A DNA stretch of 64,000 nucleotides, taken from Paragordius varius. Lineage: Eukaryota; Animalia; Nematomorpha. The stretch covers positions 13,020,001 through 13,084,000 of the forward strand of contig OZ176050.1 of assembly GCA_964247055.1 (NCBI GenBank), read 5' to 3'. Below are positions 43,578-46,500 of this stretch, one piece after another. Under the pieces are notes generated by a model, which was not told where the DNA came from, did not search any database, and saw nothing but the letters and a program-made list of their open reading frames with translations. Within the stretch, counting starts at the first letter, position 1. Each line of letters begins with the position of its first letter. Both the position numbers and the translations under genes were made by a program.

Positions 43578-46500
43578 ATGGCTCAATCCGACGAACAGCA
43601 AATTAGAAGTTTACAAAGAACCTACACCGATTTTTTGGATGACGAGGTTCACTTATATTTTTAATGATTTTAGACAAGGGACAATATATATAATGATAAA
43701 ATTGAAACATTGATAAGAAACGATGATGTTCGTTTAATAGTCAATATCAATGAATTGCGCTCTTGGAATAATGAGAGGGCTCAAAGGTAAATTGTAACAT
43801 ATTGTTTTAGTTTAATTCAAGATTCCGCCACTGAAATTGTGGCTTTTCAGCGAGCTTTACGCGATTTAATTCTTATCAAGGATCCCAAATTTGGAAAATT
43901 ACGAGAAGAGTTTTACATTGGTTTGGAAGGAAGGTTAGAATGTCACATATATATTTAGTTTTGGCAAAAATCATGTTACACCTCGAACAATTCACACTCG
44001 GTGTCTTAACCAAATTATTTGTGTTGAAGGAATTGTTACTAAATGTTTTGCAATATTTGTAATATTTAGGTTCTCTTATTAGACCCAAAATTGTACGAAG
44101 TGTACACTACTGTCCCACAACTGGCAAAACTATTGAGAGAAAATATTACGATCTAACTTCGCTTGAATCACAACCATCGTCAGGAGTTTACCCAACTAAG
44201 GTATAAATGATTCCATATATAATTTTGGTGTTTAAAAATATTTTGGAAACTATCTTACTGTATATGGTTATAATTTACTTAGTATAAACATAATTTAAAA
44301 GTTTTTATCATGCAATTTATTAAACCCTTTTTATTGACGCATTCGATAAACGGAATTAATTTTTTTTAATAATTTAATTATAACATAAATTCTTTATCCA
44401 AATCTAATTATAATTATTTTATTGATGTCGTTTTCTAAAAATCTTCATATAAAATTATACACCTTTAAATTTATTTAAGATTAATAAGCATCAATAAGAC
44501 TCTAATCATGGTTATATATAATATCTAATAAATTAAATATTTATATTTTAGCGGAATCTTATTGTATGTTACCGCTCTTAAATAGGGAAACATATTCGAA
44601 ATTTTTAACTTTTATGATACTATTAAGTAGGGGGCATAATATATTTTAATTTTTTATTATTATTCAATATAAACTAAGGCATGATTAAAATTAGTATATT
44701 GGTGAGCCAGATAGTATTTACAGTAAAAAAGTAATCGTTTTGAGAGTGTATTTTTTTTACATTTTCTTGCTTTTACCCAATAATATAGTAAAAACTGAAA
44801 TTATACGGAAACGTAAAAATATAAAGATAATTTTTAAAAGACAACCATACTTTTTAAATCTAGATTTATATCAATATAACTCATTATTTTAAATGGTAAA
44901 TTGTGAAATAATATACTAACAACCAATTCTATATTTACAATTGTAACAAAATAGCTTATATGAGAATTAAGGTTTTGGAAAGTATGGTTGTCTTTTTTAA
45001 GAATATTTATCTTTATATTTTTACGTTTTGTCCGTATAATTTCAATTTTTACTGTACTTCTCTCTTGATGAAAATACTACTATGCAATATGTAATGAAAA
45101 ACTGGACATTAAATTTTTAGTACTGTAATTAAAAAAAACTTGCACTCTTTACATATTAATAACAAATAAATAATTTTTACCTTTACATTTAGGATGATGA
45201 TGGCAATTTACTAGAGACGGAATTTGGTTTATCAACCTATAAAGACCATCAAATCGTAACACTCCAGGAATTACCAGAAAAAGCTCCTCCTGGCCAATTA
45301 CCACGTTCTATTGAGGTTTCATGTGACGATGATTTGATCGATTTATGCAAGGTATGGGCATTGCATTTTTTTAACTTGATGTAAATTTTTGCAAACTTCT
45401 TTGTAAATTAACGGAATTTTTATTTTATAAAAGGATCATTTACCTTTTATTTTTATCTTACGCATTAAAACTTTAAAAATTTGTTACAAGACGGATTTTA
45501 TAATTTGGGCTTTTTTGGTAGGAATGAATACAGGATTTTTATATATTTAATTGTACTGCGTAATATAGGACCATTTTTAGCTATTATCTCTTTCCAAAGG
45601 AAGTTAGCGTGTTGAATTTTCCATTTCTTTCTGTCTGTGGCTTGTTCAATTTTTTATGGAGAAATTTTTAACCTTCATAAATAGTAGATTGCCAAATTCG
45701 AAAACGTCGGCCTTGTTTTTTTTGTATGATCAGGTAGGTATGATTGTAATAGCTTTCTTCCATTTGAGTCTTTGACTCTGTAGATGTGACCAGTTTAACG
45801 TAAACGATATTCACGATAGCTGCATCAAGGGATTCAACAAGGTTTGATAAAGACAAAAATTTTGATTAAAAATTGTAGATGTTTGTGTTATGTTGGAAAA
45901 GAATTATAAATTTTCTGTTACCGCTTTGCAGTGATCGAAGAGATTAGATTTTCATTGGTCATGTTTCCGTTCCATATAGTATGGCAGGACATATAGTGGC
46001 GATTAAGATTTTAACCTTTGACCTCGGCAAAAGATATTTATTCTTTAACTAGTGGGCGCAAGTTATGATGGTTTTTCCAGCCAGCTTTGATTCTATACGA
46101 TAAGGCCGATTCTATGCCACTACCAGTTTTAAAGTATAACTAAGCGATATATATGCTAATTTTGGGTTTGATAAATTTCAATACAAGTTCTGTCTCTCAC
46201 AATTCTTAAATATAAAACCACTTAATGCCTGCTGCTTGAGAATATCGTTTACGTTGAGCTGGATGCATCTAACAGAGCCCAAATACAAACAGACTCACCT
46301 AATCATCAAAAAAGAAGGTTGACCCCGTAAAATTTATTTACTATTTGAGAAGCATTGAAAAACCCGCAAAAGAAATGAAAAATTCAAAATTCGAACACGT
46401 TTACCTCATTAAAAAGAAAACATTAACGTATAAAAATGAAATTTAATTGAAGATATCAGTATGCATATAATATGTAGCATCCAAACATCATGTATAAATC

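Follow-up and report, generated by a model that had tools for sequence, protein, structure and literature searches.

The MCM3 gene of the horsehair worm Paragordius varius opens with four consecutive segments of 27, 24, 25 and 25 nt which, with a probability that we put at about 0.9, are U2-type spliceosomal introns with GT-AG ends, removed constitutively from the transcripts of a functional gene and shrunk from ordinary ancestral introns. We are equally confident that they represent a real class of micro-introns (24-27 nt) clustered at the 5' end of MCM3. The gene lies in a stretch of 64,000 nt of genomic DNA, hereafter the window, for which a preliminary description had claimed a distinct micro-intron class alongside kilobase-sized introns; the size gap within MCM3, 24-27 nt against 305-4800 nt, together with the clustering at the 5' end, bears this claim out. 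When the sequence was read again, the coordinates and lengths of the four GT...TTTAG segments proved to be exactly as first described. What we add here is that each of the four lies at a position where other animals have an ordinary intron, and that DNA from a relative carries a frame-breaking deletion in one micro-intron beside exon changes that are almost only synonymous.

Four probable micro-introns at the start of MCM3

The window is AT-rich, its GC content of about 26-27% agreeing with the 26.93% given for Gordionus montsenyensis, and the identity of the gene within it is clear from its coding sequence. Exon 5 (44072-44200 of it) matches residues 135-177 of human MCM3 and 132-174 of fly Mcm3, exon 6 (45193-45351) matches residues 178-227 and 175-224 of the same two proteins, and a search with exon 6 against 1.84 billion cluster representatives returned MCM3 proteins. 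All of the gene is on the forward strand. Exon 1 (43578-43646; 69 nt, 23 codons, ATG at 43578) ends in ...DFLDDE, which is the end of mammalian exon 1, and is followed by micro-intron 1 (43647-43673; 27 nt, phase 0, GTTCAC...TTTAG). Exon 2 (43674-43786) has 113 nt, as it does in a mammal and in a contig from an unrelated animal (L008) that we return to below, and exons 3 (43811-43933; 123 nt) and 4 (43959-44044; 86 nt) likewise have their exact lengths in L008. Between these exons lie micro-intron 2 (43787-43810; 24 nt, phase 2, GTAAAT...TTTAG) and micro-intron 3 (43934-43958; 25 nt, phase 2, GTTAGA...TTTAG), and micro-intron 4 (44045-44069; 25 nt, phase 1, GTTTTG...TTTAG) precedes exon 5 (44070-44200; 131 nt). 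Two of the junctions split codons in invariant motifs, micro-intron 3 the Ser codon of GLEGSFG and micro-intron 4 the Cys codon of EGIVTKCSL.

Removing the four segments reproduces the splice junctions that had been claimed and leaves an open frame of 174 codons from the ATG at 43578 to 44200. It had also been claimed that removal restores a gap-free MCM3 N-terminus, and a 225-aa query made of the spliced N-terminus plus exon 6 does align as a single block of 220-225 aa with several MCM3 proteins: with P0053 (its residues 8-227) at 59.5% identity over 220 aa, with P0002 at 56% and with P0054 at 53%, all gap-free, and with the MCM3 fragment P0159 from a second search without a gap over residues 1-225. 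Such alignments pin every boundary to the nucleotide, and by base-composition arithmetic the chance of finding GT and AG at two fixed places is about 0.002 per segment, or about 3e-11 for four. Because both dinucleotides are found four times at places fixed in this way, a chance origin can be excluded.

Retention of the segments would interrupt the protein, as the preliminary description stated and as we confirm: each of the two segments whose length is a multiple of three (27 and 24 nt) brings in an in-frame TAA, and both 25-nt segments shift the frame. One might read this as a regulated switch, in which real micro-introns are retained and the message is then removed by nonsense-mediated decay (NMD), so that MCM3 levels are tuned in the course of the cell cycle. 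A premature stop results whichever of the four is retained, and the gene in which they cluster is a cell-cycle gene. We regard such a switch as unlikely, since the splice-site letters by themselves dictate the stops, which are no evidence of selection. A 3n intron in phase 0 with a terminal TAG necessarily closes on an in-frame stop; the stop of micro-intron 1 comes from its terminal TAG, and that of micro-intron 2 arises from the phase-2 donor reading ..G|TAA. The proposed switch is thus left unsupported. Under our preferred reading, of constitutively spliced introns, a premature stop upon retention would be a safeguard rather than a demonstrated regulatory switch, and the fact that MCM3 is a cell-cycle gene is probably incidental to the presence of micro-introns.

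In their letters the micro-introns look like the other introns of the gene. All four have GT...AG termini and end in TTTAG, as do most long MCM3 introns; donors are weak (GTW...) in micro- and long introns alike, and we see no difference in splice-site letters between the two classes. GC content is 19-24% in the micro-introns and 17-29% in the long introns, against 31-52% in the exons. Candidate branch-point motifs resembling TAAC, TCAC and TAAT are present in the four micro-introns at inconsistent distances, and no clear consensus emerges from a sample of only four introns. In every micro-intron the acceptor is the first AG at least 18 nt past the donor. In the long MCM3 introns (n = 8) the first such AG comes at 82, 82, 42, 37, 43, 45, 57 and 29 nt, so that AG is absent 18-36 nt after the donor in seven of the eight (P about 0.04, for a test window picked post hoc); because this window was chosen after seeing the data, the apparent depletion is too weak to use.

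The micro-introns are introns 1-4 of the gene, the last of them ending 492 nt past the ATG, and the first long intron begins 623 nt past it. This is intron 5 (44201-45192; 992 nt), which sits at the position of mammalian intron 4 (1928 nt) and of a 78-nt intron in L008. After exon 6 the gene model continues with exons 7 (46720-46911), 8 (48576-48766), 9 (53567-53683), 10 (54561-54673), 11 (55086-55174), 12 (55864-55953) and 13 (starting at 56259), and further exons lie near 57581-57709, 58314-58460 and 58800-58975, so that the gene runs at least to 58975. In the 13-exon model, introns 1-12 measure 27, 24, 25, 25, 992, 1368, 1664, 4800, 877, 412, 689 and 305 nt. At the start of the 305-nt intron 12 there is a 29-nt GT...TTTAG segment (55954-55982), which we considered as an intron and rejected because splicing there would break the MCM3 homology; it looks like an unused decoy acceptor near the real donor. 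A separate oddity concerns the end of exon 9 (53650-53683), where use of the sole canonical donor gives about four extra residues (…GGGFDS) before the conserved RRLEAGA in comparison with other MCM3 proteins. These residues may be a small insertion, or else the true donor may be non-canonical.

Ancestral intron positions and the DNA of a relative

To ask whether the positions of the micro-introns are old, we mapped intron positions on genomic loci fetched for several MCM3 proteins. In a mammal (L001, GCA_006229205.1, chromosome) MCM3 has introns at codons 26.0, 63.67, 133.33 and 177.0, and the Paragordius positions of 23.0, 60.67, 130.33 and 174.0 equal these minus a constant alignment offset of three residues, with identical phases. 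The mammalian introns that match micro-introns 1, 2 and 4 and intron 5 are 1071, 419, 451 and 1928 nt long, and mammalian exon 3, at 209 nt, has the combined length of Paragordius exons 3 and 4. L008, a Logan contig (GC 33%) whose product is 61% identical to the window MCM3 and 70% identical to the mammal and to P0002, repeats the lengths of window exons 2-5 to the nucleotide (113, 123, 86 and 131 nt), and the places of window introns 2-5 are taken by introns of 332, 114, 250 and 78 nt; at the site of micro-intron 1, where only the acceptor side was in view, an acceptor is present. The position and phase of micro-intron 2 recur in L003 (115 nt) and L007 (203 nt). For micro-intron 3 the matching intron is the 114-nt one of L008, and the mammal, L003, L006 and L007 have none there. 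The contigs L002, L004 and L005 are intron-free and so have no positions to compare. The orthologue comparison that had been proposed as a check on the micro-introns therefore matches introns 1, 2 and 4 in the mammal, and 2, 3 and 4 plus the acceptor of intron 1 in L008. As ordinary introns occupy the same positions and phases elsewhere, the micro-introns are very probably shrunken old introns and not new insertions. In passing we observe that the gene model P0090 (L003, GCA_026770615.1), in which ...EAYGHGLRGSAHRSS... runs directly into ...MVGDPSTAKSQ, apparently misses part of the MCM ATPase core; the record looks as if it contains a mis-predicted exon.

DNA from a second organism offers an independent view of the segments. 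Run X3, a DNA run with a different organism label (organism B) and from a different study, contains 43% of the stretch's words. One of its contigs covers 43881-44204, and with it micro-introns 3 and 4; other X3 contigs cover the rest, including the stretch with introns 1 and 2. Across exons 1, 5, 7 and 8, 19 of 20 exonic substitutions between organism B and the window are synonymous, the exception being Ser4 to Ala, and in exon 5 alone all seven differences are synonymous. Micro-intron 3 is unchanged in the organism B contig; micro-intron 4 differs there by the deletion of 1 nt at 44046 and a T>C change at 44058. Coding sequence would not tolerate such a deletion. The flanking exons are thus shown to be under purifying selection while a frame-breaking indel is tolerated within micro-intron 4.

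It is against these observations that one must weigh the idea of a decaying pseudogene, or of an artefact of assembly, in which case the segments would be small insertions, or longer introns that have collapsed, that happen to resemble introns. We judge this very unlikely. A lack of RNA support might be said to favour it: none of the contigs of X4-X6, three runs of the same species label whose RNA nature is guessed, matched the stretch at a likeness of 88% or above. A decaying gene would hardly have GT...TTTAG in four of four segments at nucleotide-exact, frame-restoring places, nor segments that coincide with ancestral intron positions, nor exons whose divergence from a relative is 19/20 synonymous. 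Collapse of longer introns during assembly had been named beforehand as an observation that would overturn the micro-introns, and it is contradicted by X3, which comes from another organism label and another study and in which micro-introns 3 and 4 lie within a single contig with practically unchanged lengths. Two further runs contain 97% and 90% of the stretch's words and possibly derive from the source sample. Among the listed runs containing the stretch, none is on record as RNA. Searches for closer sequences returned little: the exon-5 open reading frame, used to look for a close relative or transcript, found one contig only (L008, from the unrelated animal); a profile that combined the mammalian N-terminus with exon pieces of the window gene recovered 120 fragments of MCM3, none of them exceeding about 70% identity with the window MCM3; and the protein library clustered at 50% likewise yielded no MCM3 of a close relative. 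None of the hits was a protein derived from transcripts of a close relative.

The XBP1 intron spliced by IRE1 is 26 nt long, and the internal eliminated sequences of ciliates can be short. On the strength of this likeness in size one could suppose that the segments are removed without the major spliceosome, by IRE1-type cytoplasmic splicing, as U12-type introns or by ciliate-like excision from DNA, but this is less likely still, because all four have GT-AG ends and the TTTAG acceptor of the long MCM3 introns and lie where other animals have ordinary spliceosomal introns, because the A/GTATCC donor of U12-type introns is found in none of the MCM3 introns modelled, and because the segments are kept in DNA contigs of two organism labels, from unspecified tissue.

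Probable splicing near a lower size limit and known short-intron systems

If the segments are indeed spliceosomal introns, then a length of 24-27 nt may be close to the lower limit that the spliceosome of this lineage tolerates. We infer that splicing would proceed by intron definition, with a donor pairing with the first AG at least 18 nt downstream, in a TTTAG motif as for long introns, and that introns this tiny may survive only in the first 0.5 kb or so of the gene. We speculate that the restriction to the 5' end could arise in two ways: cap- or promoter-proximal co-transcriptional splicing may tolerate tiny introns, or the first half-kilobase may be protected from transposons, whose insertion enlarges the introns further downstream. 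A stronger form of this proposal, which we offer tentatively and hold to be possible rather than probable, is a position-dependent mode in which introns of about 21-27 nt, below the floor of about 30 nt usually assumed for animals, would be spliced efficiently only when no more than about 0.5 kb from the transcription start site. Such a mode would depend on a link between splicing and the cap, or RNA polymerase II in early elongation, and under it 5' ancestral introns would collapse to the minimum and downstream ones would stay long and fill with transposons.

Proximity to the 5' end is clearly not sufficient on its own. The class-I myosin gene of the same window (17575-19260, ATG at 17575) has no micro-intron, its first three introns measuring 97, about 410 and about 490 nt; because it starts with a 97-nt intron, being near the gene start does not by itself produce micro-introns, and the 5' pattern is not universal among the genes of this genome. 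A scan of the whole window for further micro-introns yielded 86 candidates, nearly all of which fell inside an exon or at the 3' end of a longer intron; the best two, 21227-21247 and 26858-26892, were rejected on their context in the myosin gene, and no other convincing intron below 60 nt was found in the 64-kb window. Transposon-like sequence is present in the long introns. A MITE-like inverted-repeat element of 273 nt (44784-45056) lies inside MCM3 intron 5, and its summed depth reaches about 13,900 in run X3, which points to a very high copy number of the family. A second MITE-like inverted-repeat element, at 17940-18265 in myosin intron 2, has TATACGGA-type ends that resemble the copy in MCM3 intron 5. 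The presence of such elements in introns gives some context to the idea of transposon shielding.

Introns of this size are rare among animals. According to a paper of September 2026 (PMC13644364), myxobolid myxozoans and Dicyema japonicum are the only animals known to have introns below 30 bp, with a genome median of 22-27 bp, and the genome of Dicyema is reduced (PMC6736024). Flatworms have microintrons with a mode of about 32-37 nt, described in Opisthorchis felineus and other flukes (PMC6530080) and in Gyrodactylus salaris and tapeworms (PMC4040987), that are adjacent to one another, lie preferentially at the 5' end and occur alongside kilobase introns (PMC6530080, PMC4040987). In Gyrodactylus they favour ordinal positions 1-2 (PMC4040987); no cause has been established, and one proposal is that they favour intron definition (PMC6530080, PMC4040987). 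Outside animals, Paramecium has introns of approximately 25 nt whose retention would be caught by premature stops (PMC5014332), and 3n introns that lack a stop are depleted in ciliates. The preliminary description gave a list of lineages with tiny introns that omits the myxobolid myxozoans (PMC13644364) and the 5' microintrons of flatworms.

The flatworm 5' microintrons are the closest published parallel to what we see in MCM3, where there is likewise a separate short size class beside kilobase introns, consecutive and at the 5' end. The flatworm modes of 32-37 nt differ from the 24-27 nt of Paragordius MCM3, the flatworm hosts are spiralians whereas Nematomorpha are ecdysozoans, and the flatworm introns are supported by transcriptomes whereas those of Paragordius MCM3 are read from DNA. 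Given the length of 24-27 nt and the nematomorph host, we regard the MCM3 micro-introns as working like the flatworm class without being members of it. With Dicyema and the myxobolids they share the status of animal spliceosomal introns below 30 nt in parasitic lineages; in those animals the ultra-short intron is the genome median, whereas here it is a minority class at the gene start, and the other MCM3 introns reach 4.8 kb and carry transposons. The MCM3 locus combines the intron length of myxobolids and Dicyema with the architecture of flatworms. Paramecium resembles it in intron length and in the premature stops that follow retention, and differs in that ciliates are not animals and that all ciliate introns are short. 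As for stop enrichment of the Paramecium type, both micro-introns of 3n length have stops, but there are only two such introns and both stops come from splice-site letters.

Implications and other features of the window

Should the micro-introns be accepted, Nematomorpha would be the third animal lineage with introns this short and the first among ecdysozoans. Extreme intron shortening evidently needs no overall compaction, because the later introns of the same gene are kilobases long and contain transposons. The sharp 5' clustering repeats an unexplained flatworm pattern in an unrelated phylum, so that a general mechanism becomes testable, the candidates being cap- or promoter-proximal splicing and protection from transposon insertion. 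There are also practical consequences. Genes of this kind will be broken by annotation and BUSCO pipelines that keep the default for the minimum intron length, a point of relevance to published claims of extensive gene loss in Nematomorpha; BUSCO scores of horsehair-worm genomes are low (71.6% in 10.1101/2023.06.26.546503). If the position-dependent mode were true, gene finders would mis-predict the 5' ends of many genes, and part of the published loss of universal genes and of the low BUSCO scores in horsehair worms could be an annotation artefact. In our literature search no paper linked hairworms with short introns; the nematomorph genome papers that were searched were without the word intron, and the Current Biology nematomorph genome paper was outside the coverage.

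Elsewhere in the window we made several observations that concern other sequences. On the reverse strand at 3100-10500 there are cysteine-rich open frames, EGF-like and YWTD-like, which suggest a large gene of the extracellular-matrix or LDL-receptor class. Just past the last placed MCM3 exon, at 59259-59831 on the reverse strand, open frames of 71 and 119 aa look like a fragment of a retrotransposon reverse transcriptase. The final stretch, 62223-64000, is a satellite array with a period of 21/42 nt, in which about 44 copies of the 42-nt unit match at roughly 65%; it has a strong skew of G over C and runs past the end of the window.
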